From the IMG/VR virus record IMGVR_UViG_3300024503_000015, positions 62,001 to 126,000 of that record: 64,000 nucleotides of DNA, one strand, 5' to 3'. Both the position numbers and the translations under genes were made by a program. This document shows positions 2,481 to 25,474 of this stretch, piece by piece; position 1 is the first letter of the stretch, and each line of letters starts with the position of its first letter. Under the pieces are notes generated by a model that did not search any database, was not told where the DNA came from, and worked only from the letters and a program-made list of their open reading frames with translations.

Positions 2481-2481
2481 A

Positions 2482-3963: not shown

Positions 3964-3969
3964 TCTATT

Positions 3970-8900: not shown

Positions 8901-11900
8901 CCTGATGTTGCCGCAACTTTAAATTGTGTACTTGTAATAGTCGAACCAATTACATAGTAGGCAGTATTTGCAGAAACTCCGCCAAATGTTGTACCGCTAA
9001 AGTAAACTGGCATGTTATCATACAAGGTTACAGTACTTGCCACTGTAATTAAGTTTGTAGTTACTGTGGTATTTGTTGCTGTTAACGGTGTGAAACTGTC
9101 TTTGTATACCTGTGCAATCTTGCTGCCAGTTTGGTATGTTAAGATGTTAGCATATTGACCAACACCAGTACCGGCAGTTAATTGAATTCTCATGCCAGTA
9201 TATGCCGCGCTTAGTGCAGTATCAGTGGCCGCAATAGTAATGCTGACTTTATCACCACTCTGAGCCGCGTTGCTGGCTGTTACATAACTTGTACCTCCAA
9301 CACCGTTGTCATCATCTAAGTCAATAATTCTTGATTCAAATACAGTATTGTCACGGAATTCGTCGCCGATTGCGTCGATGTTATATCCTGAACCGCTAAT
9401 TGTATATGTTGTATTTGTATAATTTGTACCAGCATTACCAAATTCTAAACGAAGCACTTCTGATAATGCATCTGTTACAGTATTTGTAATTTGTGCCTGA
9501 TATGCTTGGTTGTCAACCGTACCATATAATGGTACTTCGCTAACATCCACACCTTCGGCAATAACACCATATGTACCATATGAGCTGTTGCCGTTGGTAG
9601 CACGGATTCTACCGCCTAGTTCTGCTAGGTAACCTGCATAGCCGTAGTAGTTAAACACAGAAACAAGTTCTGTTAATGAGTCACTACCAGTACACCATAC
9701 ACCAATACCGTCTGACATAATTGTAGTAAAGTCGTTTTTAACCATTGACTTATTACCACGGGCATGTAGAGCCGCATCGATCTTAGCACCTGTACAGCCT
9801 ACACCAAACATTGTAACGTTCTGTGAGTAGTGTGAGCGACTTGTTACCCATACTTTGCTATCCCATGGACCAAATCCTGGGTTAAGGGCTACGTATGCTC
9901 CACCAGTTGGGCGTTTTGTACCATAGTCGTTTTCAGCAGTTAAGTCGCCATTCAATCCGCTTAGAGTACAGTTACGTAAACCAGAAGCGTTACTTACTTG
10001 GAACATATCTGACAATTCAGAACCTGCAACTGCATTGTTGTACAATACGGCAGAGCGTGTTCCTTTGTAGTTACCTGGTAAATTAATATCGTAAATGATA
10101 GAATCAATGTACTCGCCCATATCACGCTTGCATGATGCTTCGTCGTATGAGTAAACTGCTGTACAAGTTCCTGTATCTGTACTTACAGATGTCGGAGTAA
10201 TGGATCCTGCTGTTGTACCAATTGTAAATGTTGTAGTAGATGGAACTGTTAATACGTAGTATTGTGTATTTTCAGCCAACCCGCCAATTACTGCTCCGGC
10301 TACTACAGTCATTTCGCCTGTGCCGGTGCCTACGCTAAACACAGAACCATTATAACTTGCACTAATTGTTATTTCTGTGTCACTTTCAACAGTTAAAATA
10401 TAATATGTAACACCAGATACAATGTTACCAATACCAGTTCCGGTAAATGTAATCTTAGAACCTACTGTCATTCCTGTTGTAGATAGAACTGTAACAATGT
10501 TTCCAGTTGCAGTTGTGTCTGTGGCCACAGTCGATACTTGATTTGCCAAGAACTTAACTGGATCGCCCACAGACAAGTTGTGTGCTCTGGTTGTTGTAAT
10601 AACGTTGCCACTAGAACTTGTACCTGATGTTGGTCCGCCGAAGTTATAAGAAATCCAAGCAGTTGCTTCGTTTTCTAAGAATGTCTTATTAGCACGTAAG
10701 ATTTCTGCGGCAGCAATATGTCCTGGATCGTTATGGTATGTTGTTGTACCCACAACGTCTGGAGTTTCTCCAACACCCTTGTCTAATATTGCAATAATAG
10801 TGTCCATGTTTGCTTTAGCAGATGCTAGTGCTGTAGCATTACTTTCAACTTTAAGATTAACAGCATCTCTTAGATATCTGTAAGCATTCAAAGTTGCTCG
10901 CTTCTGATCACCGATTACTAGTGATGCCTGTGCTTGATAGTAACTCATACCTGCTTTGATTGAGCGGAAGTTACTGCCCATTAGAATATCGTAACGTAGA
11001 GCATCTAAAATATAACCCACGTCTCTAGCACAAGTAGCAGAATTGTAGTCTAAGTTTGGATAGTTAGTGTCAATGTAAAGTGTTACTGCACTCTGAATTG
11101 ATGCTTTGTCTGTTGACAACACTTTTGCCTGTGTTGCTACATTAGTATCTACCCAACTTGTACTTGGCAAGTTAGTAATTTCTACAGCAATAGATAATCC
11201 AGTTCCGTTGGTGAAACTTGTTAATTCTGTGCCGTCGTAGGTTGCTGCCAATGTAAATGTCGATGTCAATGGTGTTGTCTTAACATAATATGTAGTACCA
11301 GCAACTAATCCGTTGGCTGTGGTTTGTGCGATTACTTCATCGCCTACAGATAAACCGTGTGCTGTGCTGGTAAATGTTGTGCCACTAGCAATAGTTGTAA
11401 TTGTAATACGTGGCACACCAGTTGTTAAACCAGTATCAATGATGTTTGTAATAACATCCATTAATGCGCCAACTCTTGTAGAACTTGTAGCATCGCCGCC
11501 TGTGCCTGTAACATAACTTACGTTAGTTTGTAGTGCTGAATAAGAGCTTAAACCTCCGTTAGCAATGTCTGTCACAATAGATTTCATATTAGCATAGGCC
11601 GCTAATGTTGCTGTTTTATCTCCGCTATCAATCTGTAGTGCAGAAGTTAAACGTGAGTAGTATGCAATACCTGCTTGCTTACTTGCAAAATGACCACCGT
11701 AGGTTAAGTCATAGCGTAGTGCATCGATAATGTAACCAGTATCTCTAGCACACGCACTCTTGCTGTACACAATCGCTGGATAGTTTGTATTGATATACTT
11801 TAATGTTTCTGCTGTGATAAAATCTTTGTTATCATAGATTAACTTTGCCGCCGCATAGTTCTCTGCATCTACACCAGTAAAGTCTGGCCATAAGAAGCGA

Positions 11901-14900
11901 GGAACTGCTCCTCCGTCAATTGTACCAACGATATCGTCAACGATTGTACCAATTTGTGCAACTGCACCGCCAACTGCATAGCCTTTTAATTTGTATTTTA
12001 AGAACTTAATTAGTCCAAGACTTGCACTTAACTGGTTTGCCAGCACGATTGCTGTCGAAGATATTGCTCTATGATAACTACGTCCAATAGTGATTGCGGC
12101 AAAATTACTGCCAAACATCATGTCGTAGCCGATACCATCTACCATGTATCCAATGTCTCGACTGCAAGTTGTTTCGTCGTAGGATAGATAGTGATGGAAT
12201 TTCTGTACATAACCAGTACCATCTAGTTGAATTTCAGATTTACGATCTTGTAAAATGTTAAATCCTGCTACTAATGCTGGATCAACCCAACTTGTATCTG
12301 GTGCTATAGCAGTTCCTGCTTCGCCGTTGTTAATCCAATCTATAATATCTTGTACACGAGCCTGTGCAAATGCTGCCGCAGTTGCATCACCGCCTGTTCC
12401 AGATGTTACCTGAGGTGTTGTGTTACCAGACTGTGGAGTTACAGAAATTCTTTGTGCAACATCGTCGATAATGCTCTTTAAGAATGTGTATGCGGCCACT
12501 GTTGCGGCTGTTTCGCTAGAACTAATAGTTAGATTTAAACCACTGTAATATGCACTACCGGCAATTAAAGTCTGTGTGTTACCACCGTAGGTTAAATCGT
12601 AACGAATTGCGTCAAGGATGTAGCCAATATCGCGTTGGCAAGCGGCTTGTCCTGTTGCGCCAAGTGCTGTCCAAACAACAGCATAGTTGTTTTGAATGTA
12701 TCGGCTAACATCTGCTTTAATGAAAGCATAGTTATTTGCAATCTGTGTTCTTGCATTTAAGAAATCTACATCAAGATTAGTTGGATCTGTGATAACTTCT
12801 GCTGGGACAGCATCCAAACCGTTGTTTAGAATGTCGTAGGCTGTGTTAGCACTTAGTTCAATTCTATCAATTGCTACGGAATTACCCACTGAACCTGTAA
12901 CACCAGTAGTAATTTCTTTTACTGATGCTCCAATAAAGCCGATTACACCTATTGTTGGCAATAACTGTTGTGCAATTACTGTCTGTGTTGATGTAATTCC
13001 TCTGTAATAGCTCATTGCGTTCCATGAACTTAGGAAGTTACTACCAAACATTAGGTCGTAGCATAATGCATCAATAATATAACCCACATCTCGTGAGCAT
13101 GTAGATGCTGTATAGATTAAATCTGGATATGTTGCATTGATCCAGTTGATTGCGGCTGATTTAATTCTTGTTTTTGCCGCTTGAATATTAGTATTCTTAG
13201 TTGTAAGATCACTTGCTACCCAAGTAATATCTGGAGCAACTGTTGTTGGCTCTGTTCCTGTATTGATTGTGTCGTACAATTCTTGAATACGTGTTTGTGC
13301 ATCTGTTGCGGCGCCAGCACTACCGGCTGTGCCGCTAGTTACTTGACTTACAACGTTTCCTGAGCTAGGTGTAATTGCAAGACCTTTTGCAATATCATCG
13401 ATAATAGTTTTTACATAAGCCCATAGTGCCAATGCTTGAGATTTTTCACCTACTTCAACTAACACACCGTTGCTATAGTAAGAACGTGCGGCAATTTGTG
13501 TTGCTAGGTTGCCACCATATGTTAAGTCAAAAGTTAGTGCGTCTACAATGTAGCCAACGTCACGTTCGCAAGTTGTTGCATCGTAGATAAATCCGCTGAA
13601 CGGAGAGACAGAACCTGCAATTTGTACATTAATCCATGCTGTAACTTCTGCTTTTAAGAATGCTTTGTTAGCAAGAATTAATCTTGCGGCATGGAAGTAT
13701 CCAGAAGTATAAGCGTTGCTACTACCACCAGTTGGTGTTGGTAGGTCAAAGGTAGGAACTGCGGTTAGTCCTGTTGACAGAATGTCTGTCATTACACCAA
13801 TATTTGATGTAATTGTATCTGTACCTGCGCTGGCTTTTAATACTGCATTCTTAACAAAATCTACAGTACCTAAAGTCTGTGGTAATTGATCTGCTAAAAC
13901 AACTCCGGTTGATGCAAGGCCTCGTTGATATGCCATACCTGCTTTTGCAGACATAAAGTTACTGCCAAACATAACATCGTATGCTAGTGCATCAACCATA
14001 TAGCCAACATCACGTGAACATAATGCTTGGTCGTAATCTAATGTTGGATAATTTGCATTAATCCAAGCAATAGCACCTATTTGAATATTTGTTTTATCTG
14101 CAACAATAGCGTTAAATGCTGTTAACAATCTTGGACGAACCCAACTTGTGCTTGGAGCAATAGTTGTTGGCTCTGTGCCTGTATTGATTGTGTCGTACAT
14201 TTCTTGGATACGTGCTTGTGCAAATGTTCCTGCGGCTGCACCGCCTGGTGTTCCAGAAGTTACCTGTGAAGATGAAGTTGTTTTTGTCCATCCTGCTGTA
14301 TTACCTACAGCAATATTGTCGATAAACGATTTAATTCTTGTTTGAACAGCCAATGCTTGATCTTTTTCGCCTGTTTCAACAAAAATGCCCTTGCTGTAGT
14401 AAGAACGTGCGGCTACCTGTGTTGCTAAATTGCCACCGTAGGTTAAGTCATATACCAATGCGTCTACAATATAACCAACATCTCGTTCGCAGGCTGTTTG
14501 TCCTGCGCCGCCGTATGTAAATCCAACGAATGGAGAGATGTTTCCAGAAATCTGTGCATTAATCCATGCACTAACTTCAGACTGAATAAATGATTTGTTA
14601 GCAAGAATTAATCTTGCGGCATTGTAATAATCTGCATCATAAGCATTACCTGTTCCACCAGTTGGTGTTGGGTATACAAATGCTGGAACAGAACTTAGGC
14701 CGTTTTCTAAAATTGCTTTGATTGATGCAATATTAGTTGTTACAGAATCTAATGCAATAGTTTCTGTGACATTAAACATAAACTCTTGTGTTGCTGTGTT
14801 GCCTTCTGTTGGCACAATAGAGTTGTTTGCTACTAAGTTTGGTGCAACTGCCTTAATTCTTTCTAGTGCAGAAATAGTTTTTGGCTTGTCATTAACTAAA

Positions 14901-17413
14901 TTTGCAATAGCAGGCTTAGGACTGATAACAGTTGAACGTAGTTCATCACCAACAACTGCGGTATTCTTTGGAAGAACGATTGGCAACACTTCGTAGAATG
15001 TACCAGTCTTAACGCTGATTGTTGTGTTTGAAAATACTGCCGCTGGAATTGCTGTGGATGTTCCTGCTAGGATACCGTCAGTAACAATAGTCAATAATGA
15101 TTGTGCTGTAGTTACTGTGTCTGCTTCCGCAGTTAATGTACTGTCAATAATCTGAGCTACTGCTGTGTTTAAAGCAACACCGTTAGCCAATTGATAATTA
15201 ATTTCTGGTGGGTTGTTGTTTAAAACATCTTCCACTAAATCTTTCATGTAATTGTATGCGGCAACAGTTTGAGTAATCTGTTGTCCAAAGTTGCTGTTAA
15301 TATATGCACTACCAGCAGTGGTATAATAGGCCTTGGCTGCTTTAGTTGCTTCTTCATTACCACCGTGGCCGATATCATAAATTAGTGCGTCTACTAACAG
15401 GCCAACATCGCGTTGGCAGAAATCATAATCGTAGGATAATGATCCAGTCATTGATGCTGTTTGTGTTGTTAGTGTAGAAACTGTACCACCTTGTGTAGAA
15501 CTAATTGTAAAGTGTGAGCCGTCTACAACTGTTTTAACAAAATATTTTGTTCCAGCAGTTACACCGCCAACTGTTCCTGAGAACTCAATAGGCATATTTG
15601 CTGTTAAGTTTGTTGTGTCGTCTGCTGTAAATTCATTAGTTGCCGCAGAACTTGCTGTAATTGCTACAGAATATGTGTTAGTAACCCAGTTACTAACTTC
15701 TTTCATAATGAATTGTTTGTTCTTTGCCAACAATTCTGTTGCTTGTCTATTTCTGTAACCTTTTTCAATTTGTTCACAAGCATAACGCACAGTCTTCCAA
15801 GGCTTATCAATTGTAAGACCTTGGCCATCTTCAAGACTATCTGTTCCCAGTGGAGCAACATATACTAGGTTATTAATAACACCGTAGTACGCCCATGTAG
15901 GATAGCCACCGCTAACACGCAATATTTGACCTTCTGTGCCCACTGGCAGTCTTGTTGGTCCTGTTGTACCGTAGTAATATGTGTCGCCTGCTGTGGTTAG
16001 AACTGCTGATTCACTACCAGCAGCCAATAAATTCCAATATGTTGCGGTTGTGTCTGCATCTGGTCTGTTTAATAAACTTGCTGTATGCTCTAATACACAG
16101 ATATAACTGTTTGCACCAAAGAATACTGCATCGCCTTGTACATAATCATGATTCACTGTCCATGTTACAGAATAACCGCTTTCAATAATAATATTATCAA
16201 TTGCGCCAGCAGTTACTCCGTCTACTGTCAATGTTAAATCGTTGGCTGGGCTAATACCACCGACGCTTGTACCAGAGATAACAATTTGATCTCCGTCTGA
16301 ATAATTTGTTCCTGTGTTGTTTTTAACAACTGTATAAACAGTTCCTGTACGTGTAATATCGAAAGTTGCGGCCGAGCCAATGCTTGGGCTAACTGATGTT
16401 CCAGATACTCCAGTATATGTTGTTGACACATTGGTCCACTTAATACCTGTGTTTAATCTGTTCCAATAAGTTAAATTTGGTGGCTCTTGATTTGTGTTGT
16501 CTGCTATTGCCAGGTAAGTATAACTTCCTAATCTTACAACATCGCCTACTTTATAAGCAGTAGACGAAACCCAATCACCGTTAAAATTAAATCCAGTAGT
16601 ATAGACGTCCCAGTATGCTGTCGCTGTACTTGGATTTTGATTTGTATGATTTTGTGTGGCAATATATGAATAACCACCATATGTTACCACATCGCCTTCT
16701 TGGTAGACTGTAGAAGAACTCCAAGAATCTTCAAATTGAAGACCTTCAACAAATACTCCCCACTTAGTATCATCAAAAGTTGTGCTGGAAGTGTGTTGTG
16801 TTGTACAGATCCAAGTGTTGGCGCCGTACTTAACGATATCATTAATTTTGTAGCGTACAGAAGAATTCCATACACCTAGATATTCTAAGCCACTGTTGAA
16901 TACAGTCCACTTACTTTGGTCTGCTTCGAGACCTAATGATGCTGTGGCAGCAGATGTGTGTGCTGTATTACAAATATATGTAATACCGCCATACGAAACA
17001 AAGTCATATACGCGGTAACGAGTCGAGGTTGCCCACTCGCCTGTCCAGTAAAACGATTCTGCAAATGCTTCCCACTTGCTTTGATCTGCTTCTAAGCCCA
17101 GTGTTGTGGTTGCCGCAGATGTATGAGAAGTTAAACAAATATAAACTAAGCCGCCGTACTTAACTTGGTCGCCTTTATTATAATAAGTAGAAACGTCCCA
17201 GTCGCCCTGCCAACTAGTACCGTCACTGACTAGATTCCATTTTGGTGGATTTGCGTCACTATCAGTGACAAATAAACTTGCTGAAGTATGATTTATAACA
17301 CAAATATAACTCTTACCACCGATGTTGACTACGTCGTCAACTACGTAAGAAGTACTTGGTGTCCAATCACCTTTCCAAACAAATTTAATTCTACCTAATC
17401 TAAATTCTGCCAT
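5906..17413 (-). CDS. Giant (3835 aa) tail fibre / virion structural protein
   Basis: N-terminal W..T.Y..GD.V.YGG..Y.C...HTS repeats (CBM5/12-like), ten CxRD helical repeats, beta-helix-like segments, W..VAYG.G.FVA propeller repeats, C-terminus shared with 17462-25474; late promoter and GAGG RBS upstream. Confidence 0.75.
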   Translation of the reverse strand: MAEFRLGRIKFVWKGDWTPSTSYVVDDVVNIGGKSYICVINHTSASLFVTDSDANPPKWNLVSDGTSWQGDWDVSTYYNKGDQVKYGGLVYICLTSHTSAATTTLGLEADQSKWEAFAESFYWTGEWATSTRYRVYDFVSYGGITYICNTAHTSAATASLGLEADQSKWTVFNSGLEYLGVWNSSVRYKINDIVKYGANTWICTTQHTSSTTFDDTKWGVFVEGLQFEDSWSSSTVYQEGDVVTYGGYSYIATQNHTNQNPSTATAYWDVYTTGFNFNGDWVSSTAYKVGDVVRLGSYTYLAIADNTNQEPPNLTYWNRLNTGIKWTNVSTTYTGVSGTSVSPSIGSAATFDITRTGTVYTVVKNNTGTNYSDGDQIVISGTSVGGISPANDLTLTVDGVTAGAIDNIIIESGYSVTWTVNHDYVQGDAVFFGANSYICVLEHTASLLNRPDADTTATYWNLLAAGSESAVLTTAGDTYYYGTTGPTRLPVGTEGQILRVSGGYPTWAYYGVINNLVYVAPLGTDSLEDGQGLTIDKPWKTVRYACEQIEKGYRNRQATELLAKNKQFIMKEVSNWVTNTYSVAITASSAATNEFTADDTTNLTANMPIEFSGTVGGVTAGTKYFVKTVVDGSHFTISSTQGGTVSTLTTQTASMTGSLSYDYDFCQRDVGLLVDALIYDIGHGGNEEATKAAKAYYTTAGSAYINSNFGQQITQTVAAYNYMKDLVEDVLNNNPPEINYQLANGVALNTAVAQIIDSTLTAEADTVTTAQSLLTIVTDGILAGTSTAIPAAVFSNTTISVKTGTFYEVLPIVLPKNTAVVGDELRSTVISPKPAIANLVNDKPKTISALERIKAVAPNLVANNSIVPTEGNTATQEFMFNVTETIALDSVTTNIASIKAILENGLSSVPAFVYPTPTGGTGNAYDADYYNAARLILANKSFIQSEVSAWINAQISGNISPFVGFTYGGAGQTACERDVGYIVDALVYDLTYGGNLATQVAARSYYSKGIFVETGEKDQALAVQTRIKSFIDNIAVGNTAGWTKTTSSSQVTSGTPGGAAAGTFAQARIQEMYDTINTGTEPTTIAPSTSWVRPRLLTAFNAIVADKTNIQIGAIAWINANYPTLDYDQALCSRDVGYMVDALAYDVMFGSNFMSAKAGMAYQRGLASTGVVLADQLPQTLGTVDFVKNAVLKASAGTDTITSNIGVMTDILSTGLTAVPTFDLPTPTGGSSNAYTSGYFHAARLILANKAFLKAEVTAWINVQIAGSVSPFSGFIYDATTCERDVGYIVDALTFDLTYGGNLATQIAARSYYSNGVLVEVGEKSQALALWAYVKTIIDDIAKGLAITPSSGNVVSQVTSGTAGSAGAATDAQTRIQELYDTINTGTEPTTVAPDITWVASDLTTKNTNIQAAKTRIKSAAINWINATYPDLIYTASTCSRDVGYIIDALCYDLMFGSNFLSSWNAMSYYRGITSTQTVIAQQLLPTIGVIGFIGASVKEITTGVTGSVGNSVAIDRIELSANTAYDILNNGLDAVPAEVITDPTNLDVDFLNARTQIANNYAFIKADVSRYIQNNYAVVWTALGATGQAACQRDIGYILDAIRYDLTYGGNTQTLIAGSAYYSGLNLTISSSETAATVAAYTFLKSIIDDVAQRISVTPQSGNTTPQVTSGTGGDATAAAFAQARVQDIIDWINNGEAGTAIAPDTSWVDPALVAGFNILQDRKSEIQLDGTGYVQKFHHYLSYDETTCSRDIGYMVDGIGYDMMFGSNFAAITIGRSYHRAISSTAIVLANQLSASLGLIKFLKYKLKGYAVGGAVAQIGTIVDDIVGTIDGGAVPRFLWPDFTGVDAENYAAAKLIYDNKDFITAETLKYINTNYPAIVYSKSACARDTGYIIDALRYDLTYGGHFASKQAGIAYYSRLTSALQIDSGDKTATLAAYANMKSIVTDIANGGLSSYSALQTNVSYVTGTGGDATSSTRVGALMDVITNIIDTGLTTGVPRITITTIASGTTFTSTAHGLSVGDEVIAQTTANGLVAGTTYYVKTTPLTSTFTLAATYDGTELTSFTNGTGLSIAVEITNLPSTSWVDTNVATQAKVLSTDKASIQSAVTLYIDTNYPNLDYNSATCARDVGYILDALRYDILMGSNFRSIKAGMSYYQAQASLVIGDQKRATLNAYRYLRDAVNLKVESNATALASAKANMDTIIAILDKGVGETPDVVGTTTYHNDPGHIAAAEILRANKTFLENEATAWISYNFGGPTSGTSSSGNVITTTRAHNLSVGDPVKFLANQVSTVATDTTATGNIVTVLSTTGMTVGSKITFTGTGIGNIVSGVTYYILTVESDTEITISASYNGSVFSVGTGTGEMTVVAGAVIGGLAENTQYYVLTVPSTTTFTIGTTAGSITPTSVSTDTGTCTAVYSYDEASCKRDMGEYIDSIIYDINLPGNYKGTRSAVLYNNAVAGSELSDMFQVSNASGLRNCTLSGLNGDLTAENDYGTKRPTGGAYVALNPGFGPWDSKVWVTSRSHYSQNVTMFGVGCTGAKIDAALHARGNKSMVKNDFTTIMSDGIGVWCTGSDSLTELVSVFNYYGYAGYLAELGGRIRATNGNSSYGTYGVIAEGVDVSEVPLYGTVDNQAYQAQITNTVTDALSEVLRLEFGNAGTNYTNTTYTISGSGYNIDAIGDEFRDNTVFESRIIDLDDDNGVGGTSYVTASNAAQSGDKVSITIAATDTALSAAYTGMRIQLTAGTGVGQYANILTYQTGSKIAQVYKDSFTPLTATNTTVTTNLITVASTVTLYDNMPVYFSGTTFGGVSANTAYYVIGSTITSTQFKVAATSGSSTPITLSTASGSMTMYEAGWDHTVPGKTIENTLDLTTQYIIEPRISYTAPGYTATARTLSATATWKELTYGDSKYVAIASSGTTTSYSANGTTWATAGALSASASWVDVVYGGGEGARATAIIGGLGGQGAVFEAVLGVANTTGAATADQVASVNIISGGQGYTTPPVIVFTPVSGGTGAVATCAVLDGEIVSVTVTIPGTGYTVPPTVSAATDRLTQVTVNSWGRNYTGAPSVTVSDPFTGSAWSSGGTVTTGVYIYYVDSGDKNWYYVTSGGTFTTSGPIHTSGSAANGTVTLTYAGTTAVLTPTRTNEGVSGFTVTDTGKGYTTTPTISILDTGARYVAIATSTGDNCYTTSAGILAGSTWTAGTSTGKTDLAGLAYGGGVYVAVGGTASAVSSTSGSLWTSRTIPTLGSGTYSSVAYGAEMFVAISTGNLATAYSSNGTSWTAGGNLPASLSWTSVAYGNGRFVAIASGSKRVAYSIDRGTTWLESPAGLPASTTWSKISYGQGLFFAVATGGTTAATSPDGVTWTLRAMPSSSNWTAVQFGNISSNPLWVAASATSGTVAASIRTGAQATGRAKVASGVVTEIRMLEPGSGYPKGTVTATTVTTNLITVDNTTNLVDSQPIEFYGTSAGGLVEEQTYYVIGSTITSTQFKVSATQGSATPVTLSTATVSGMTYRAGPIYTLTDPNKVKVASLRIRMADGALGNPSFVNRGADNTTATSETQGDGYSDLYQPSNFINIAGLYDIPEAGANVEFDSLPGVYFKLVVVTNELGELGDKTAQFQINPALTVLQAPRHGDRVTTRIKYSQVRLTGHDFLYIGTGNKEQTNYPNVDISTANVANQAQFSAGGRVFFTSTDQDGNFNVGNLFGVQQATGTATLNASAFNLSGLNSLQLGSVELGIGSAIITQFSTDPFFTADSDSVVPTQRAIKAYITAQIGGGQSSLNVNTLTSGIVYIAGNSISTTTGEGIKVTSKMNFTGGIDGAPVALGFFMQR
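10070..15433 (-). repeat. Ten in-frame CxRDxGYxxDAxxYDxxxGxN helical repeats
   Basis: Counted in the translation; copies 2-9 alternate YGG(N/H) and (F/M)GSN endings; identical 29-nt DNA at 13664-13692 and 14594-14622 marks a ~930-nt internal duplication. Confidence 0.85.
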
Positions 17414-17461: not shown

Positions 17462-20400
17462 TTATATTGCTCCTGGGCGGTTCCATGTGTTAACAAAGTA
17501 AGAATACGCCATACCGTCACCGTCCCACCCGCCAAATTGTCCGTCAACTGTTACCTTTGTTGGCATATTAACCACTGCGCCTGTTAAGCCTTCCGGAATA
17601 GTGCTGGCAATTCTGTCTGCGCCACCTACTAAAACTGTACCAGCAATCAACTGTCCAGTAAATGTATTAGCACCACCTTGACTCAAACGTCCAGTTAAGT
17701 ATGCCTTAATTGCTCTCTGTGTTGGAATAATATTATTACTGTTAGCAATAAATGTTTCGTCTGTGCTAAACTGTCTAATAACCACACTTGATCCACCAAC
17801 TGCAATACCGCCCAGTGATAGTGTTTCTAGACCTGTTAGTCCGAATTGTGTAGCACTTAAAGTAACAATACCAGTTGCTTGTTCAACACCAAACAAATCA
17901 CCAACTTTAAAGTTACCGTCTTGGTCAGTACTAGTATAGAACACACGACCAAAGTTAACTTCAACTGCCTGATCCTGTGGAGCAAGAACTGTATCTTCTG
18001 GTAGGTTAGGATAGTTACTTTGAATAGCGTTTCCGTAGCCCACATTTAAGAAATCGTGTCCTGTTAATCTTGCCTGGCTGTATTTTGTTCTAATAATAAT
18101 ATTTGCTTCGTGTGCTGGACTTAATTCCACGGTCATATCTGGAGAAATTTCAATATTTGCTTCAATATTTGGTGCTGTTGTTCCATACACAGGGGTAGCA
18201 TTTGTTACTTTATAAATTTTACTGTTTCCTGAAATAACCAAGTTATCACCAGGAGCAGGTAGTTTAGATAAATTCTTAACTATTAATGTTAATCCGGTTT
18301 GGAATGTATCAGCATAGCCACTGCCATTAATTGTAATAATTGTAGAGTTAGTATTATAATCTTGTCCTCTGTTTACAAAAGTTGGATTTCCTAGTGTACC
18401 GTTGCTAATTCTTAATGAAGTAGTTGCAGACACAGTAACGTTTGGATCTCTAAAAGTTAATAATGGAGTACTGGTATAACCTGACCCTGGCTCCCATAAA
18501 CTAATAGATGTAATAGTTCCTGAAGTAATAACTGCACGACCTTTAGTTCTGCAACCTGTTTCAATAATACTACCAACAGTTTGAGCCGCCACTGTAACAA
18601 ATTTTCCTTGGTCGTTGTTTGTGCCTACAAACGCAAATTTAATAGCACCATATCCGTCATCCGATACTGTGCGTTCTGTCCATGCGTAGCCGTCTTCTGA
18701 TGTATATGCAACTCCAGCAGTGCTAGATAGAGCTAAAAATACACCCTGACCATATTCAATTTTGTTTACACCTGAGATAGTATATGGAGATTGTGTCCAT
18801 GTTATACCATCTCTACTGTAAGCAGGTTTAGCACTACTGCTAGAAACTGCAACAAACAAGCCATTACCATAAGCAACGTCGCTCCATGTTGTAGAGCTAG
18901 GTAATGTTGCTGATGACCAACTTGTTCCGTTTGAACTGTAAGATGCAGTAGTACTTACTGTTGAACTAGCAGTTCCTGAAACAGTAAATGATGTAATAGC
19001 GCCGCCAATAGCCGCTACGCCTGTTACAGTAATTGTAATATCGTTTGCTGTGGTTGCTCCGCCAACTGCTGTACCTAAAACACTAACTATACTAGATGTT
19101 GTATAACTAGAACCACCACTATTAACTGTTACTGTATAGCCACTGCTTCTAGCGGTTACATTAAATGTTGCCCCAGATCCACCGCCTGAAGTAGTAGACG
19201 ATGTAACACCTGTATAGGTAGTTCCATCGGATACTGCAACAAATTTTCCGTTACCAAACGTTAGTCCAGTCCAACTTCTTGCAACTAGTCCTGTACCGCT
19301 AGACCATGTACCGCCATAGTTTGAACTGTATGCAGAGCTAGTAGTTTCAGCGGCTATAGCGACAAATTTTCCGTTGCCGTACGCAACTTTACTCCAAGTA
19401 GTCAACGAAGGCAATGTAGTTGTTCTCCAACCTTCTCCGTTGTTAATAGAATATAGTGCAACTGAACCTGGATCTCCAAGGGCGCCACCGCTGGAAATTA
19501 CAACCCAGCGATTGTTACCGTAGGCAATATCTGTCCAAGTTTTTGGACTTGGCAAAGGTATTGCGTCCCAGGTTGCGCCACCGTCTGTCGATTTTCCAGC
19601 AATAGCATTACCACTTGGTAGAGCAATAAATGTGCCATCGCCATAGGCTAATCCTATCCAACTAGTGCCCGGAGCCAATGTATTAGTTGTCGATGCTGTT
19701 TGTGTCAAACTAGGAGCAGATATTGTAACTCTTGGTTCAACATAGTAAACGGTTGAATTATCTAATAACGCTTCTATAGTAGTTCCTGGATTCATATGAT
19801 CCCAACCTACTGCCGCAATGTTCATAGATCCGGTATCTGTTTTTAATGTACTTGCAGTGCCGCCAGGTGTACCGCTGACTGTAAATGTTGAAGTACTATC
19901 GATCGTCTTGACATAATATGTTGTTCCAGCAGATACATCTCCAAACAAATTAGTCGAATATGTACCGTTCATCGAACCGTAACCAATGGTTAGTGTCGAT
20001 TTTGCATTTGTAGTTGTTCCTGTCATCGATCCTGATGCTGTAGACAATGTAAATGCTGCCGCTGTTGTTTTACCCAATACTTCTCCGGTAGCAGTTGAAA
20101 GGTTTAGCGCACTACCTCCAGGAGAAGAACTAATTGTAAATGTTGTTGCATCATTAACGGCTAGAATATAATATGTTGTTTCGTTGACAATACCGCCAAA
20201 TGTATTTCCTGTAAACTTAATTGGATTGTTTGCAACAAATCCTGCTGTTGAGTCAACAGTAATTAAGTTTGTTAAAGTTTCTGTTTCTGTTACAGTTACA
20301 GAAATAACTGTATCTGTAACTGTAAATGTTGAAGAGTTAACAATCTTATTAACATAATACTTTGTTCCAGCAACAATTCCTCCAAACACAACGCCTGTAA

Positions 20401-23400
20401 ATTCTATTGGATTTAATGGCACTAGCGATGCTGTTGAAGATGTTGTAATGTAATTTGTAGCCGCAGTAGTTGCTGTGGCAGTTATACTTACTAATGTTGT
20501 CGATATTGTAAATTTGGATGCTGAAATAACATCATTAACATAATATGTTGTACCTACTGCAATGTCTCCTATTGAGGTTCCAGTAAACTGAACAGGCATG
20601 TTAATTTTCATATCATTAGTTTGACCTAATACATAACTGTTATAACCTGGGAACGACATAGTCATTGCACCTGTGTCAGAATTTAACAGCCATGCTGTTC
20701 CAAAAGGTTCAGTACTGATAGTTATTGTCGTACCATCGATAATTTCTTTAATGTAATAAGTGTAAGAGTCGGTAACGCCGCCAAAAACTGCGCCGCCAAA
20801 CTTAACTTGCATATTAACACTTAATTTTGCAGTACTAGCCAACGTTAACGTATTAGTTGATCCGCCAATTGTTTCAACAACGTTGACGAAATCAACAGAA
20901 GTATTAGTTACAGTGGTACTGTAATATGTAGGAATAAATTGTACTGGTTGATTCAAATACAATGTATCTGTGGTATAGTCTCCGTCTAAAGTAAGTATTC
21001 CTGTACTGTTATTTGTAGAAATAATGTTCAACGGTTCAAAAGATTCTTTAAGAATCTGTGCTACTTTAGTGCCCTCGTCATATGACGAAATATATCCGTA
21101 TTGTCCTGCTCCTGTTCCGCTGTTAAGGAACACTCTCATACCAATGTAGTTACTTGCAGTTTTTGTATCTGATCCTGCTAAAGTAATAGTTTCTTCGTCT
21201 CCTGCTTGAGCATTATTAGATGACACTAAGTAATTTCTTCCGCCAACTGCACTACCTGTATCTGTAATACGTGCCTGGAATACTGCGTTGGATCTAATTT
21301 CGTCTCCAATTAAGCGAGCATTAGTACCTGCACCTACTATAGAATAATTTGCATAGGCAGTATATTGATCATTCTCTGTCTCAAGGTAGAACGTAGGATC
21401 AGAATTAATCTGAACTTGTGCTCCGTAGAAGCGTGTATTTCCGCTTAGACCTGCTCGACCTCTTGGATAAATTCTAAATTGAAGATTATTATTCAATCCA
21501 ACATTGTCGTACACAGTCATCCATATTCTATACCAACCTTCAGTTAACTCTAGTTTACCGTATGAAACTGGAACTGCGCCGCCAGATGCTGTAGATACTG
21601 CAAGACCTTTAGTGCTAAATGTAAATTCTAAATAAGAATATACTGTTGATGAACCACTGTATATTGCGGCGATGTCAAATGTTGCAGATGATCCTTGTTT
21701 TGCGTAGATGCTAAATGTGTAATTTAAATCGCTGTTTGTTGGAACAACTCCTGAAACAGTGGCGGATAAAATAGAACTTCCCGATAGAGTTGCTACAGTT
21801 AAGAAGCAATCATTTGTTCCGTCTTCGCCGCCCAACGAGCTACCTGGAATTCTTAATTCGTTACCAGTAACGTAGCCGCTACCTCCAGCATTGACTACTG
21901 CTGAGTAACCTGTAGCACCCACAGTAATATCGAATGTAGCACTATTACCTGAACCAGTCACATTAACTGTTTCTACTGCTGTGTAAACTTTACCAGGAGG
22001 TAATACAGAAATATTTTGATAGATATAACTTGAATCGCTACCAGATGTTGCACCTGTCAGTGTCCATGCATCTGATTGTCCAAATGGAGATGTTGTATTC
22101 TTCTGAATAGTAACATTACCGTCTGTAGTCCATGGACTAGTTGAAAATTTATTACTGTATTGTAATAAGTTTGTTGTGTCTGCAACGTAGTTAGAGCCAG
22201 CATTACTAAATTGTATTGCTAATAATTCAGCATTAGTACCAAATGCACTTTGTACACTGGCCTGTACTTGGCTAGATCTGTTGTCAATTTTTCCTGAGAT
22301 AGGAACTTCTGTATTATCGTAACCTTCAGCAATAACACCATATGTACCATATGAGCTGTTACCGTTGGTAGCACGGATTCTACCGCCGTCTTCGGCAAAA
22401 TATCCAGCATAATTGTAGTAACCGAATACTGACACGCACTCAGTTAATGAATTAGAACCAGTACACCATACACCAATACCATCACTGATGATTTGTGTAA
22501 AGTCATTACAAGTTATTGAACGATTGCCGCCGTTGTGTAGTGTTCCATCGATTTTTAATCCGGTGCAACCGACACCAAAGTTGGTAACGTTTTGAATGTA
22601 AGGGCTTCGACGAATAATCCAAGTTCTAGTATCGTCAGGACCATTACCTGGATCTAGACTTACATAGGCACCACCCGTTGGTCTGCGTGTGCCAAAGCCG
22701 TTTGGACTTGTTAAAGATCCTGCTAGACCTGTTAATGTCATGTTACGAATGCCTGTAGCATTACGTACATAGAACATATCTTTCAAACAGTCTCCAGCAT
22801 ACACTGTCATAAATCCTGTGCCAGTTGTTAGTGCAACTACTGAACCTCCTACTGTTTCTGAAATAGTAATTTGACTGCCTACTATTTCTTTAACATAATA
22901 TGTTTGTCCTAGAGTAACTCCACCAAAATCATCATTTGTTGTTGCCGCAGAAAATTGAATAGGCATATTAACTGTGACATTTTTAATAGATCTCAGTGTA
23001 AATCTATTAGTTGAGCTACTTGAGCTAGAAGTTGATGTATAAACAGTTACTTTAGGTTGTACCACAGTTCCACGAAGTTCGTCACCGATTAGAGCAGTAT
23101 TATCTGCAACTATGATCGGTAGTTCTTCAGAATATGTTCCTGTTTTAATCATGATAGAAGTTGTCTGACCTTGATTAATTAAAGGAACATTTTCTGTGCT
23201 GGCATTTTGTATTGCATCGATTACAATGTTCATCAGGCTGGTAATTTCAAGATACGCACCAGACTCTAAAGTTAATCCATTGTTGATATACTGTTGTACT
23301 GTCGGGTCTGCTATTACTTCCCAATTTTGATTTCCAACGGTTTCTGGATTGTTATCGATATTGCCATCAATTAAACTCTTATAAAATATTTCGTTCCAAT

Positions 23401-25474
23401 AGACAATGTCGTTAGTGACATAAGTTTCTGTAGCGTCCCAAACAATATTTTCAACTTGATAGTTAACATCTGGGTTAGAGTTTTGATAGACATAACCAAT
23501 CAAAACTAATAGTCGTTCAAGTGCGGCAACAATATATGGCTGTGCCGCATCTGTTTCTGTGTTAAAGAAAGTAGTAGTGCTACCTTCAGCAAAGAATGCC
23601 TTAGTAGCAATTACTGTTCTACTATTACTAGCTCTAGTAATGTCATAAGAAAGTGCGTCAATAATTAATTCTGCATCTCGTCTAGTCGAGTATTCTTGGA
23701 ATTCCGATGTTGGGCTAAATGGAGAATTACTATTTGCTTTTTGATATAGCATCCACTGATACATTTCTTCAACTAAGAAATCTTTGTTCTCAGTTAATAA
23801 TGTATTGGCATTCTGGAAATAAAATCCGTTCTCAACTTGTTGACAAGCATACGCAATAGTTTTCCAAGGTTTATCCCATGTCTGACCGTGATCTGCATCG
23901 TCTACACCGTCGTTAGATACGTAGTACAGATCTGGAATAACAAACATTTTTTTCCAGTTTGGTTGTCCGTTAGAAATGTGGAAGTGATAATCTTCTGTAT
24001 CTCCGGCAGCACCGCCTTGTGGAATAATTGGAACAGCAACAGTTGATGTTCCGTCAAATGTAACAATGTCGCCTTGAGTATTACCTGCGTTTTCTTTTGC
24101 ATGAACTACATATACTACCCAGAATGCGTTAGCAACATCTAGGTCAGGTCTAAAGAACGAACTAGATGTATGATTTCTAATACAACGATATGTGCAGTTT
24201 TCCCAGATTACTAAGTCGCCGATAATATAATTTGTGGTGTTAGTCCAGAAATTAGTCCATCTAACTGATGGAACAACCAACTTCCATTTAAGATAATTGA
24301 CACCTACAAAGTCAATATTGTCCCCATTGGTCAATGAACCGTTAGGAACTTCGCTGATAATCAATGTTGTACTGTCATTTACAGATACCACAGTCTGGCC
24401 TTGCGTAAATGATGGGTTAACTAAAACCATGCCCTTTGTAATGCCAGCCGTTGAAACTACTTTTAAAGTTGTTCCAGAACTTCCTGTGTCCACATAAGAA
24501 CCAGTTACTGCATAACTTGTTGGATCTTGGCCTGCGCTATCTATCACGGCTGTGAATAATTGTCCGCCTCTGCGTACAACATCACCGACTCTATATTGAG
24601 CACCCGAACTCCACTCGTTCATCATTCTATAACCTTGGGTTATTAGTTCCCAAGCAGATGACGAGTCTTCAGCATTAACTGAAGGAATGATATTTAAGTT
24701 ATTGTTGATTAAACTTACGTAAGTGTAACCGCCATAGATAACAATGTCGCCTTTTTGATACAATGCTGAACTGGTCCAGCCATTTTCAAATTGTGTACCT
24801 GGTAGCCAAACATTAAATGTAGTTGTATCAAATGTAGTAGTAGAAGTATGTCCTTCTGTACAAATATAAACATCTGCTCCTAGTTTAACAAGGTCGTTTA
24901 ATTTATATCTTGTCGATGCAGTCCAAGCACCTTTGTATTCGATACCATTGTTTACTACTTCCCATTTGTAGTTGTCTGCTTCGCGGCCGTCTGTAATATT
25001 GTCAGCAGATGTATGATCTTCAACGCAACGATAAACTATACCGCCATATTTTACAATATCTCCAAAACCATAGACAGTAGAAATAGCCCAAGCAGTATTC
25101 CAGTTATCGAACTGTGCGTATGTGTCCCATTTGGTTAGGTCAATGGTTGTTAATCCACTGGTATGTGCCTCGGTACAAATATAAACAACACCACCAAATC
25201 TAATGATATTGCCGATTGAATAAAATGTGCTCGGTGTCCATTCTTCTCTCCATGCTCGACCATCAATCATTAGTTCCCAGCGAGGAGTGCTTGCGCCACC
25301 GCCTGTTACATAATATAAGTCGTCGTAGAAATTACTAGAGGATGTGTGCGGCTCTTTACATACGTAAGTTTTACCTTCGTATTGAGATACAGCGTCTCTG
25401 TTGTAGAACACGCCATCGTTCCATTGTCCTTTCCAGGTATATCTTAATCTACCAATTTTAAATTCTGCCGCCAT
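17462..25474 (-). CDS. Giant (2670 aa) tail fibre / virion structural protein, paralog of 5906-17413
   Basis: Same N-terminus (EFKIGRLRYTWKG), same C-terminus (RLTGHDFL, TSTDQDGNF, PTQRAIKAY) and several PIxFxG.xFGG.....YYV domains. Confidence 0.75.
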   Translation of the reverse strand: MAAEFKIGRLRYTWKGQWNDGVFYNRDAVSQYEGKTYVCKEPHTSSSNFYDDLYYVTGGGASTPRWELMIDGRAWREEWTPSTFYSIGNIIRFGGVVYICTEAHTSGLTTIDLTKWDTYAQFDNWNTAWAISTVYGFGDIVKYGGIVYRCVEDHTSADNITDGREADNYKWEVVNNGIEYKGAWTASTRYKLNDLVKLGADVYICTEGHTSTTTFDTTTFNVWLPGTQFENGWTSSALYQKGDIVIYGGYTYVSLINNNLNIIPSVNAEDSSSAWELITQGYRMMNEWSSGAQYRVGDVVRRGGQLFTAVIDSAGQDPTSYAVTGSYVDTGSSGTTLKVVSTAGITKGMVLVNPSFTQGQTVVSVNDSTTLIISEVPNGSLTNGDNIDFVGVNYLKWKLVVPSVRWTNFWTNTTNYIIGDLVIWENCTYRCIRNHTSSSFFRPDLDVANAFWVVYVVHAKENAGNTQGDIVTFDGTSTVAVPIIPQGGAAGDTEDYHFHISNGQPNWKKMFVIPDLYYVSNDGVDDADHGQTWDKPWKTIAYACQQVENGFYFQNANTLLTENKDFLVEEMYQWMLYQKANSNSPFSPTSEFQEYSTRRDAELIIDALSYDITRASNSRTVIATKAFFAEGSTTTFFNTETDAAQPYIVAALERLLVLIGYVYQNSNPDVNYQVENIVWDATETYVTNDIVYWNEIFYKSLIDGNIDNNPETVGNQNWEVIADPTVQQYINNGLTLESGAYLEITSLMNIVIDAIQNASTENVPLINQGQTTSIMIKTGTYSEELPIIVADNTALIGDELRGTVVQPKVTVYTSTSSSSSSTNRFTLRSIKNVTVNMPIQFSAATTNDDFGGVTLGQTYYVKEIVGSQITISETVGGSVVALTTGTGFMTVYAGDCLKDMFYVRNATGIRNMTLTGLAGSLTSPNGFGTRRPTGGAYVSLDPGNGPDDTRTWIIRRSPYIQNVTNFGVGCTGLKIDGTLHNGGNRSITCNDFTQIISDGIGVWCTGSNSLTECVSVFGYYNYAGYFAEDGGRIRATNGNSSYGTYGVIAEGYDNTEVPISGKIDNRSSQVQASVQSAFGTNAELLAIQFSNAGSNYVADTTNLLQYSNKFSTSPWTTDGNVTIQKNTTSPFGQSDAWTLTGATSGSDSSYIYQNISVLPPGKVYTAVETVNVTGSGNSATFDITVGATGYSAVVNAGGSGYVTGNELRIPGSSLGGEDGTNDCFLTVATLSGSSILSATVSGVVPTNSDLNYTFSIYAKQGSSATFDIAAIYSGSSTVYSYLEFTFSTKGLAVSTASGGAVPVSYGKLELTEGWYRIWMTVYDNVGLNNNLQFRIYPRGRAGLSGNTRFYGAQVQINSDPTFYLETENDQYTAYANYSIVGAGTNARLIGDEIRSNAVFQARITDTGSAVGGRNYLVSSNNAQAGDEETITLAGSDTKTASNYIGMRVFLNSGTGAGQYGYISSYDEGTKVAQILKESFEPLNIISTNNSTGILTLDGDYTTDTLYLNQPVQFIPTYYSTTVTNTSVDFVNVVETIGGSTNTLTLASTAKLSVNMQVKFGGAVFGGVTDSYTYYIKEIIDGTTITISTEPFGTAWLLNSDTGAMTMSFPGYNSYVLGQTNDMKINMPVQFTGTSIGDIAVGTTYYVNDVISASKFTISTTLVSITATATTAATNYITTSSTASLVPLNPIEFTGVVFGGIVAGTKYYVNKIVNSSTFTVTDTVISVTVTETETLTNLITVDSTAGFVANNPIKFTGNTFGGIVNETTYYILAVNDATTFTISSSPGGSALNLSTATGEVLGKTTAAAFTLSTASGSMTGTTTNAKSTLTIGYGSMNGTYSTNLFGDVSAGTTYYVKTIDSTSTFTVSGTPGGTASTLKTDTGSMNIAAVGWDHMNPGTTIEALLDNSTVYYVEPRVTISAPSLTQTASTTNTLAPGTSWIGLAYGDGTFIALPSGNAIAGKSTDGGATWDAIPLPSPKTWTDIAYGNNRWVVISSGGALGDPGSVALYSINNGEGWRTTTLPSLTTWSKVAYGNGKFVAIAAETTSSAYSSNYGGTWSSGTGLVARSWTGLTFGNGKFVAVSDGTTYTGVTSSTTSGGGSGATFNVTARSSGYTVTVNSGGSSYTTSSIVSVLGTAVGGATTANDITITVTGVAAIGGAITSFTVSGTASSTVSTTASYSSNGTSWSSATLPSSTTWSDVAYGNGLFVAVSSSSAKPAYSRDGITWTQSPYTISGVNKIEYGQGVFLALSSTAGVAYTSEDGYAWTERTVSDDGYGAIKFAFVGTNNDQGKFVTVAAQTVGSIIETGCRTKGRAVITSGTITSISLWEPGSGYTSTPLLTFRDPNVTVSATTSLRISNGTLGNPTFVNRGQDYNTNSTIITINGSGYADTFQTGLTLIVKNLSKLPAPGDNLVISGNSKIYKVTNATPVYGTTAPNIEANIEISPDMTVELSPAHEANIIIRTKYSQARLTGHDFLNVGYGNAIQSNYPNLPEDTVLAPQDQAVEVNFGRVFYTSTDQDGNFKVGDLFGVEQATGIVTLSATQFGLTGLETLSLGGIAVGGSSVVIRQFSTDETFIANSNNIIPTQRAIKAYLTGRLSQGGANTFTGQLIAGTVLVGGADRIASTIPEGLTGAVVNMPTKVTVDGQFGGWDGDGMAYSYFVNTWNRPGAI

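Follow-up and report, generated by a model that had tools for sequence, protein, structure and literature searches.

Phycobiliproteins use a Cys-x-Arg-Asp (CXRD) motif for their bilin, and the motif is also present in BBAG-1 and BBAG-3, bilin biosynthesis-associated globins (BBAGs) of heterotrophs to which the bilin is attached without lyases; a further globin, BBAG-2, binds biliverdin and is without CXRD (Rockwell et al. 2023, PMC10151467). The bilin-binding globins are thought to have originated in heterotrophs and to have been adopted later by cyanobacteria (PMC10151467). Phages of non-photosynthetic hosts can carry genes for bilin synthesis, namely hemO and a gene for a ferredoxin-dependent bilin reductase (FDBR), and these genes were described as "still enigmatic" by Wegner et al. 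(2024, PMC11480375), who named phytochromes or BBAGs merely as possibilities for the phage bilins. Here we analyse a 64,000-nucleotide stretch of DNA, positions 62,001 to 126,000 of the IMG/VR virus record IMGVR_UViG_3300024503_000015, which comes from an uncultured jumbo phage of river water (the window, to which the nucleotide coordinates below refer unless another source is named). Its largest open reading frame (ORF), P0001 (5906..17413, minus strand), encodes a giant tail-fibre protein of 3835 residues with an array of ten units, each carrying a Cys-x-Arg-Asp motif. The units are predicted globins that probably bind a bilin, and the phage itself encodes a haem oxygenase (HO) and an FDBR.

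Phage globins are unmentioned in PMC10151467, in PMC11480375 and in the photoglobin survey PMC8717448, and the literature searched held no paper combining bilin, globin, tail fibre and phage, and none describing the present finding. By that literature, tandem units in a phage fibre would be new among bilin-binding globins in both their architecture and their biology.

Ten CxRD units in a giant tail-fibre protein

The 3835-residue protein begins with CBM_5_12 repeats (six Pfam matches), continues with the unit array at residues ~656-2464, and ends in a beta-rich C-terminal third. Its assignment as a tail fibre is based on matches to the PHROGs tail-fibre families 9851, 4527 and 5342 and on the flanking fibre-assembly and baseplate wedge genes. 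A scan for C.RD.G[YLE]..D gave ten matches in this ORF (10070-15418), where 2e-5 were expected from composition and where only one of 20,000 shuffled sequences contained any match. The motif cysteines are residues 666, 975, 1132, 1282, 1439, 1592, 1750, 1888, 2128 and 2428. Their spacing is 138-158 residues across copies 2-8 and is wider where small beta inserts intervene. Copies 2-9 are eight full units that can be aligned over ~150-155 residues, and two subtypes alternate through them. Type A has the signature YDLTYGGN (TYGGN after YD; Cys975, 1282, 1592 and 1888) and type B the signature YD.MFGSNF (MFGSNF; Cys1132, 1439, 1750 and 2128). In copies 1 and 10 the match to the unit profile is confined to the central helices. 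The original prediction, which had been made from the nucleotide sequence, described ten CxRD copies with a Cys in each and alternating subtypes in copies 2-9, and the motif scan and unit alignment bear this out. It also described an alpha-helical block in an otherwise beta-rich fibre, in agreement with the AlphaFold2 (AF2) models, in which the repeat block is helical, and with the Gly/Thr/Ser-rich composition of the flanks.

All ten units are encoded on the minus strand. Unit 1 (15212..15448; Cys666, CQRDVGLLVDALIYD) is partial or divergent, and its helix E to G part alone matches the profile. The predicted globin domains of type A are unit 2 (14171..14656; residues 920-1081, Cys975), unit 4 (13250..13735; residues 1227-1388, Cys1282), which was modelled inside the pair model described below, unit 6 (12320..12805; residues 1537-1698, Cys1592) and unit 8 (11432..11917; residues 1833-1994, Cys1888). 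Those of type B are unit 3 (13739..14158; residues 1086-1225, Cys1132), unit 5 (12818..13237; residues 1393-1532, Cys1439), which was modelled alone, unit 7 (11885..12304; residues 1704-1843, Cys1750), recognised by motif and unit profile, and unit 9 (10751..11170; residues 2082-2221, Cys2128), which has a beta insert upstream. Unit 10 (10022..10153; Cys2428, CKRDMGEYIDSIIYD), again recognised by motif and unit profile, is partial or divergent like unit 1.

A small beta-rich insert of the form P-[IV]-x-F-x-G…GG-[VL]…T-x-YYV precedes units 1, 9 and 10 (residues ~605-650, ~2000-2075 and ~2290-2420), and two near-identical copies of it lie in the C-terminal third of P0001, near residues 2840-2900 and 3560-3620.

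The array is not an assembly artefact, because the array stretch was reproduced with zero differences in contigs from four independent metatranscriptome runs, and at least 18 DNA runs of riverine metagenomes contained it in full. That RNA libraries contain it is consistent with transcription, though no proof of it. The four RNA-library assemblies all break at one 43-base piece (14588-14630), which is a repeat boundary between units.

Predicted fold of the units

An A-B pair (residues 1204-1515; alignment of 78 pairs) was modelled by AF2 with a predicted local distance difference test score (pLDDT) of 95.6 and a predicted TM score of 0.92, and a B unit (residues 1393-1532; 96 sequences) with a pLDDT of 95.0. 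In the models the last helix belongs to the preceding globin domain and not to the following unit. The models were compared with 48,161 chains by VIA-align and with the PDB by Foldseek. For the pair model, the top eight VIA-align matches were phycobiliproteins or the bilin-binding domain of ApcE (Z 10.8-13.0, root-mean-square deviation 2.5-3.6 Å, 118-146 residues), and the next were globin-coupled sensors, the bilin-binding photocobilin globin and RsbR. For the B-unit model, the top eight were again phycobiliproteins or the ApcE bilin-binding domain (Z 12.6-14.7, 2.9-3.9 Å, 122-133 residues), with the best scores given by the ApcE domain (Z 14.7) and allophycocyanin (Z 14.6), and the next were the photocobilin globin, pXO2-61, RsbR and globin-coupled sensors. 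In Foldseek, the top 50 matches of the B-unit model were all phycobiliproteins (probability 1.00, TM 0.61-0.76, E 3e-3 to 1e-2); the top matches of the pair model were almost all phycobiliproteins, but with E-values of only 0.15-0.8. A structure search of the ESM Atlas gave no useful match.

Helical models may reach a Z of about 13 in VIA-align through chance arrangement. The globin fold was accepted because the matches span the whole domain, come from a single family and fit the register seen in the sequence. Both unit types are accordingly predicted, with high confidence, to be globins whose nearest solved structures are phycobiliproteins. The fold proposed in the original prediction thus withstood modelling of an A-B pair, since the structure searches gave a globin and not some other helical bundle.

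The units share with phycobiliproteins (phycocyanin, allophycocyanin, phycoerythrin and the ApcE domain, their best structural matches) the globin core, a domain size of ~140-160 residues, and a Cys-x-Arg-Asp in register at the start of helix E. The embedding of the domain in a very large multi-domain protein is a further likeness to ApcE. The X-Y N-terminal hairpin of phycobiliproteins, in contrast, is missing from the units: the alignments start at phycobiliprotein residue ~24-45, and there are ~8 residues before the first helix of the unit. The units differ also in having three additional invariant residues, Asp(+9), Asp(+14) and Tyr(+30) (numbered from the Cys), in following one another in tandem, 2-34 to a chain, whereas phycobiliproteins are separate alpha and beta subunits, and in being encoded within tail-fibre proteins by phages in which lyase genes were not found; none was found in the cyanobacterial genomes scanned.

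An unrelated helical repeat might have come to share a short motif with phycocyanin by convergence, an option that had been left standing beside the proposal of a globin. The sequence E-values are marginal, and a language-model search pointed, with low recognition, to Gp6-like baseplate clusters. Two independent high-confidence models, however, match phycobiliproteins along the full length of the domain, with every other fold ranking lower, and the motif is in register on the corresponding helix. Taken together, the models, the structure searches and the motif register effectively exclude convergence in an unrelated helical bundle, and we would give it hardly any credence. The Gp6-like and Baseplate_J clusters were rejected as candidates, as they had no Pfam support, Gp6-like matches being lacking there, and as T4 baseplate chains were absent from the structural matches.

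Sequence relation to phycobiliproteins and conservation of the units

At E<=10, a profile of the eight full units matched 39 PDB sequences, of which only about four were not phycobiliproteins, with a best E-value of 3e-4. The best match aligns helix B, the following loop and helix E, and places Cys79 on Cys84, Arg on Arg86 and Asp on Asp87. The likeness to the chromophore helix of phycocyanin that had drawn attention to the repeats is therefore found again in profile alignments. The B-unit profile reached a best E-value of 1.7e-3 against the PDB, and with one 727-residue stretch phycocyanin alpha ranked first in the PDB at E 0.12; both alignments put the motif on the same three phycobiliprotein residues. 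The phycobiliprotein family PF00502 was the top or only Pfam match in three of the eight units (14-18 bits, E 0.0024-0.043), namely in unit 6 (E 0.043), unit 8 (E 0.0024, model positions 33-137) and unit 9 (E 0.0067, model positions 72-154). Genome-wide, there were five sub-threshold matches to PF00502, all within two giant ORFs, the one of 3835 residues and a second of 3103 residues.

Relatives of the unit-bearing protein are encoded by at least 578 IMG/VR stretches. Eighty loci gave 552 unit matches, of which 302 were unique full units. Copy number varies, and the relatives show AB, ABAB, ABABAB… patterns, so that the A-B pair is the evolutionary module. Of the alternating pairs that had been proposed, then, the A/B alternation is conserved across relatives; a pairing of the alpha/beta type was not established for these tandem domains without an X-Y hairpin. 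Compared with 1.84 billion representative proteins, the B-unit profile matched 1,401 clusters (50% identity) at a threshold of E<=1e-3 and still 591 at E<=1e-30. The top proteins of the family have 4,800-6,400 residues, and across the family a protein has 2-34 units. Stand-alone units are essentially nonexistent, with three short fragments only among 5.8 billion proteins. A motif scan of 185,579 species genomes gave nine loci, every one of them in a metagenome bin and probably on a mis-binned phage contig, and zero cyanobacterial loci. One contig of 335 kb with a unit (L140, PBPT01000016.1), filed under a Candidatus Neomarinimicrobiota metagenome-assembled genome, looks like a mis-binned jumbo phage, and three contigs of "Rhodobacteraceae bacterium Water_Bin34", with 5-6 units each, look like mis-binned jumbo-phage contigs.

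Conservation was scored over 1,579 units from 150 proteins clustered at <=50% identity. The Cys is kept in 94.1% of the units, Arg(+2) in 94.9%, Asp(+3) in 98.2%, Asp(+14) in 99.6%, Tyr(+30) in 97.9% and Thr(+48) in 89%. The best-kept columns are thus polar, as expected of a ligand site.

A conserved Cys could instead serve disulfides or other cross-links between units or chains, hardening the fibre, with the likeness to a bilin site a mere relic. Each unit offers a single conserved Cys in a secreted, oxidised environment, and A-B pairs could pair their Cys residues. Arrays with odd counts and lone units occur, however, and the Arg and Asp are conserved equally with the Cys, although a disulfide needs neither. 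In the phycobiliprotein fold, moreover, the Cys at this position is known to point into the chromophore cleft within the domain and not towards a domain interface. We therefore consider cross-linking an improbable reason for the conservation.

The ligand might also be haem, or a biliverdin held non-covalently, bound as in sensor globins or BBAG-2. Such binding could be argued from the globin-coupled sensor globins, which gave Z values of about 10-11, and from BBAG-2 as a precedent (PMC10151467), since HO alone would supply biliverdin. Against this, the 1,579 units have no conserved His of the kind that haem globins have on helix F (no well-occupied column exceeds 15% His), phycobiliproteins outrank haem globins in every search, and the units have the CXRD that BBAG-2 lacks. 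Haem, one of the ligands first suggested for the repeats, is unlikely given the absence of a conserved His, and haem and non-covalent biliverdin taken together strike us as very improbable.

Bilin genes in the same phage

The source record is 270 kb long and estimated to be 71% complete, and no HO, FDBR or CpeT was found in it, its end preceding the syntenic site of the bilin genes. An adjacent HO-FDBR pair is present in a complete 364-kb relative, which also has units, and in one further record, and synteny puts the site just beyond the end of the source record. Four IMG/VR contigs are 99.98-99.99% identical to the last 12,428 bp of the record and extend 9,963 bp further. On the overlapping contigs, the HO gene (L089:1456-2010, 82.8 bits) and the FDBR gene (L089:2003-2683, 60.6 bits) lie 7.3-8.5 kb past the end of the record, between ClpS and a DUF6321 gene. 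An overlapping contig of 212 kb from the same phage holds the HO/FDBR pair together with the gene for the 3103-residue giant protein, which has six units. The pair is present in 18 of the 22 loci with the conserved ClpS…CsgF arrangement. With the FDBR of pelagiphage Mosig, a member of the phage PcyX / alphaproteobacterial PcyA lineage, the reductase has 50% identity, and with cyanophage PcyA ~25%.

The surroundings of the pair (L089:649-7830, 2-9 kb past the end of the record) encode CsgF, CsgG with an SH3 domain, a Bax1-inhibitor-like membrane protein, Hsp20, ClpS and a C-terminal piece of Hsp70. The CsgF-CsgG pair of curli secretion homologues is conserved across the jumbo clade to which the phage belongs.

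Six records, including the complete genome, had no GAF, PHY, CpeT, CpeS or HEAT_PBS domain. The units are thus the sole recognisable bilin-binding fold encoded, and no lyase was recognised. The proposal that the units carry a bilin, already part of the original prediction, gains strong circumstantial support here, because the same phage encodes HO and a bilin reductase and no other recognisable bilin acceptor.

Cassettes of hemO with pcyX or pcyA in phages were reportedly described by Ledermann et al. in 2016. Phages from both freshwater and the sea that have no photosystem genes carry the same gene pair. Studies of the cassettes give the enzymes and leave the acceptor unnamed, whereas here the phage itself encodes a candidate acceptor. 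In pelagiphage Mosig, the one cultured carrier of a cassette, no unit was detectable, unlike in the present phage.

The BBAGs offer the other close comparison. The units resemble them as phycobiliprotein-like globins outside photosynthesis with a CXRD as in BBAG-1 and BBAG-3 (by the definition in PMC10151467). HO and FDBR are encoded in the same phage genome as the units and on the same 212-kb contig, though in no single cluster, and four of the 22 syntenic relatives are without the pair. Attachment of the bilin without a lyase, as in BBAGs, would fit a genome in which lyase genes were not found. The BBAGs, however, are single-domain cytoplasmic proteins clustered with pre-PcyA genes, whereas the units occur only as arrays within giant virion proteins, lie 60-190 kb from the HO/FDBR pair, and are accompanied by an FDBR of the phage "AX" lineage, unlike the BBAG pre-PcyA.

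Probable bilin attachment and a pigment-free alternative

The analysis shows the repeat and how it is conserved, its predicted fold and the register of its motif, bilin genes in the same phage, and no other acceptor or lyase; attachment of a bilin to the units, their location in the virion and any role of the pigment there are inferences. On balance, we think it likely that the units are self-attaching bilin-binding globins of the phycobiliprotein/BBAG kind, built into the tail fibre and taking a phage-made bilin as their ligand. Each unit would consist of helices A to H of the globin core and lack the X-Y hairpin, and its Cys-x-Arg-Asp at the start of helix E would form the bilin site. The Cys would serve for covalent attachment and the Arg and Asp as hydrogen-bonding residues, as in phycobiliproteins and in BBAG-1 and BBAG-3. 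In the infected cell, the phage HO would open host haem to biliverdin, and the phage FDBR (of the PcyX/PcyA "AX" type) would convert biliverdin to phycoerythrobilin or phycocyanobilin. The bilin would then form a thioether to the unit Cys without the help of a lyase, as in BBAGs and ApcE, and the resulting virion would bear ~8-10 bilins per fibre chain, with more on the 3103-residue giant protein.

Several observations weigh against bilin binding of this kind. The invariant Asp(+9) and Asp(+14) of helix E have no phycobiliprotein counterpart and hint at a differing site. The similarity of the units to phycobiliproteins in sequence is not significant at database scale. The deeper profile of 78 pairs was weaker against the PDB (E 0.13) than the eight-unit profile (E 3e-4); the sequence signal is therefore centred on the motif, and the claim of a globin fold rests on the structure searches. 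PF00502 scores were 13.0-18.3 bits, below the gathering threshold of 22.2 bits, and the units, phycobiliprotein-like as they are, stand outside PF00502 by that family's own rule. HO/FDBR is missing from four of the 22 syntenic loci, and the pair is not adjacent to the fibre genes. Finally, Mosig and P-SSM2 have an FDBR without detectable units. As S-PM2, conversely, has units without an FDBR, a strict co-occurrence of units and FDBR was rejected.

The units could also be globins that descend from bilin-binding ancestors and have lost the pigment, serving now as rigid helical spacers or as receptor-binding modules, with the CxRD and the extra Asp kept for folding, domain-domain contacts or metal. 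Ligand-free globins exist, and the stressosome protein RsbR and pXO2-61 are among the structural matches of our models. The invariant Asp(+9/+14) and Tyr(+30) are foreign to phycobiliproteins, HO/FDBR is missing from some relatives, and the number of units per protein ranges freely between 2 and 34, as it does in structural repeats. Packing alone, however, hardly explains a lone Cys kept at 94% in 1,579 units with ~30% overall identity in an extracellular protein. The three conserved residues are the very ones that hold the ligand in the nearest fold family (PMC10151467), and the phage invests genes in making bilin although no other acceptor is apparent. Loss of the pigment is thus possible but, in our judgement, rather unlikely, and self-attaching bilin-binding globins remain the reading that we prefer.

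Cyanophage relatives and a possible link to light-dependent adsorption

A tblastn search of 50,697 phage isolates found units in 72 records, all of them cyanophages. In T4-like cyanophages such as S-PM2, P-HM2, S-RSM4 and Syn1, the units lie in giant proteins of the "short tail fibre / virion structural" type. These giant proteins have the same CxRD units and are encoded near baseplate and fibre genes; in S-PM2, p088 lies between virion structural genes and p218 adjoins gp12. They are annotated as hypothetical or structural, and no paper was found that noted a globin or bilin link for them. The T4-like cyanophages differ from the present phage in being of another lineage (capsid <60% identical), in having fewer and more divergent units, in infecting bilin-rich hosts and, for some, in carrying cpeT. 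A possible enrichment of units in phages of Synechococcus over those of Prochlorococcus was dropped, as tblastn misses divergent units and P-HM2 was found by profile alone. In the record of S-PM2 (AJ630128; L153, 168556-173383), 16 annotated tRNA genes lie inside the coding sequence of the 3779-residue p218, which looks like a coordinate offset in the deposit.

If the units carry a bilin, their most likely role would be in a light-responsive or light-protective fibre, for example in light-gated adsorption, and this is the least supported step of the proposed sequence of events. Adsorption of S-PM2 is light-dependent in the account that 10.1101/167650 gives of Jia et al. 2010, and the same account ascribes light-dependent adsorption to unknown changes in receptors or fibres. 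P-HM2 does not adsorb in the dark, P-SSM2 adsorbs in the dark to a smaller extent than in light, and P-SSP7 adsorbs in the dark (10.1101/167650). Unit matches in these four phages were counted with the same profile at E<=1. S-PM2 has ten matches in two giant ORFs, with cpeT and without FDBR, and P-HM2 has four in two giant ORFs, with both cpeT and FDBR. There were zero matches in P-SSM2, which has FDBR and no cpeT, and zero in P-SSP7, which has neither gene. In S-PM2, cpeT lies 1.4 kb upstream of the unit-bearing p218 on the same strand. The pattern linking units to light-dependent adsorption rests on four phages only and proves nothing, and a reading of the units as light switches is weakened by the report that BBAGs are photo-inert (PMC10151467). 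It is doubtful that a pigmented fibre of up to 34 domains acts as a viral light sensor that gates adsorption, and that the virion, in place of the host antenna, is the true client of phage hemO-pcyX/pcyA and cpeT.

The phage and its other giant proteins

The window covers a structural module that encodes three fibre-assembly paralogues, two giant proteins, two baseplate wedge proteins, the major head protein and the portal. The three paralogues, tail-fibre-assembly proteins of phrog_863 with 318, 493 and 313 residues, are encoded in tandem (1524-4911, minus strand) directly downstream of the giant fibre gene. Against the jumbo phages Sinorhizobium Phosso, Vibrio 2.275.O, Pseudomonas PA5oct, Serratia BF and Yersinia fHe-Yen9, the major capsid protein shows 65-70% identity, and against T4-like cyanophages <60%. 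A megablast search of the region against 50,697 phage records gave no match. IMG/VR holds a large clade of related jumbo phages of ~360 kb with head proteins 81-89% identical, one of them a complete genome of 363,943 bp. psbA was absent from all 18 clade records examined; this absence and a capsid nearest to those of jumbo phages of proteobacteria led us to reject a cyanophage identity. The original prediction had spoken of other aquatic T4-like phages. The present phage is not T4-like, being nearest to jumbo phages by its major capsid protein, although units do occur in T4-like cyanophages.

A paralogous fibre protein of 2670 residues (17462..25474, minus strand; recognised by Pfam and PHROGs) had been said to keep one degenerate, Cys-less copy of the repeat, and this was so: a single motif copy, STRRDAELIIDALSYD, lies at residue 597 (about 23639-23686), with Thr replacing the Cys. 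The paralogue had no significant match to the unit profile. At their N-termini (17250-17413 and 25000-25474), both giant proteins of the window have 5-6 repeats of the chitin-binding type (CBM_5_12), and in each repeat a Cys stands in a YIC/YVC context. The second unit-bearing protein of the phage, that of 3103 residues, is encoded outside the window (G000:C1:197786-207094, minus strand). Its six globin units were recognised by profile, the strict CxRDxG scan matched three of them, and two of the sub-threshold PF00502 matches are in this protein. A third giant ORF, of 4694 residues, begins in the window (60483-63998, plus strand), runs to G000:C1:136564 on the opposite strand to the fibre genes, and had no globin unit by the unit profile.

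Implications

If the units do bind bilins, they would provide a concrete acceptor for phage-made bilins and would explain bilin synthesis in phages of non-photosynthetic hosts. Self-attaching bilin domains in tandem could, in addition, serve as fluorescent tags. A chromophore in a virion fibre would be a new property of virus particles and a candidate basis for light-dependent adsorption. The unit family would extend the bilin-binding globins into the virosphere, with phages as possible vehicles in the history of these proteins.

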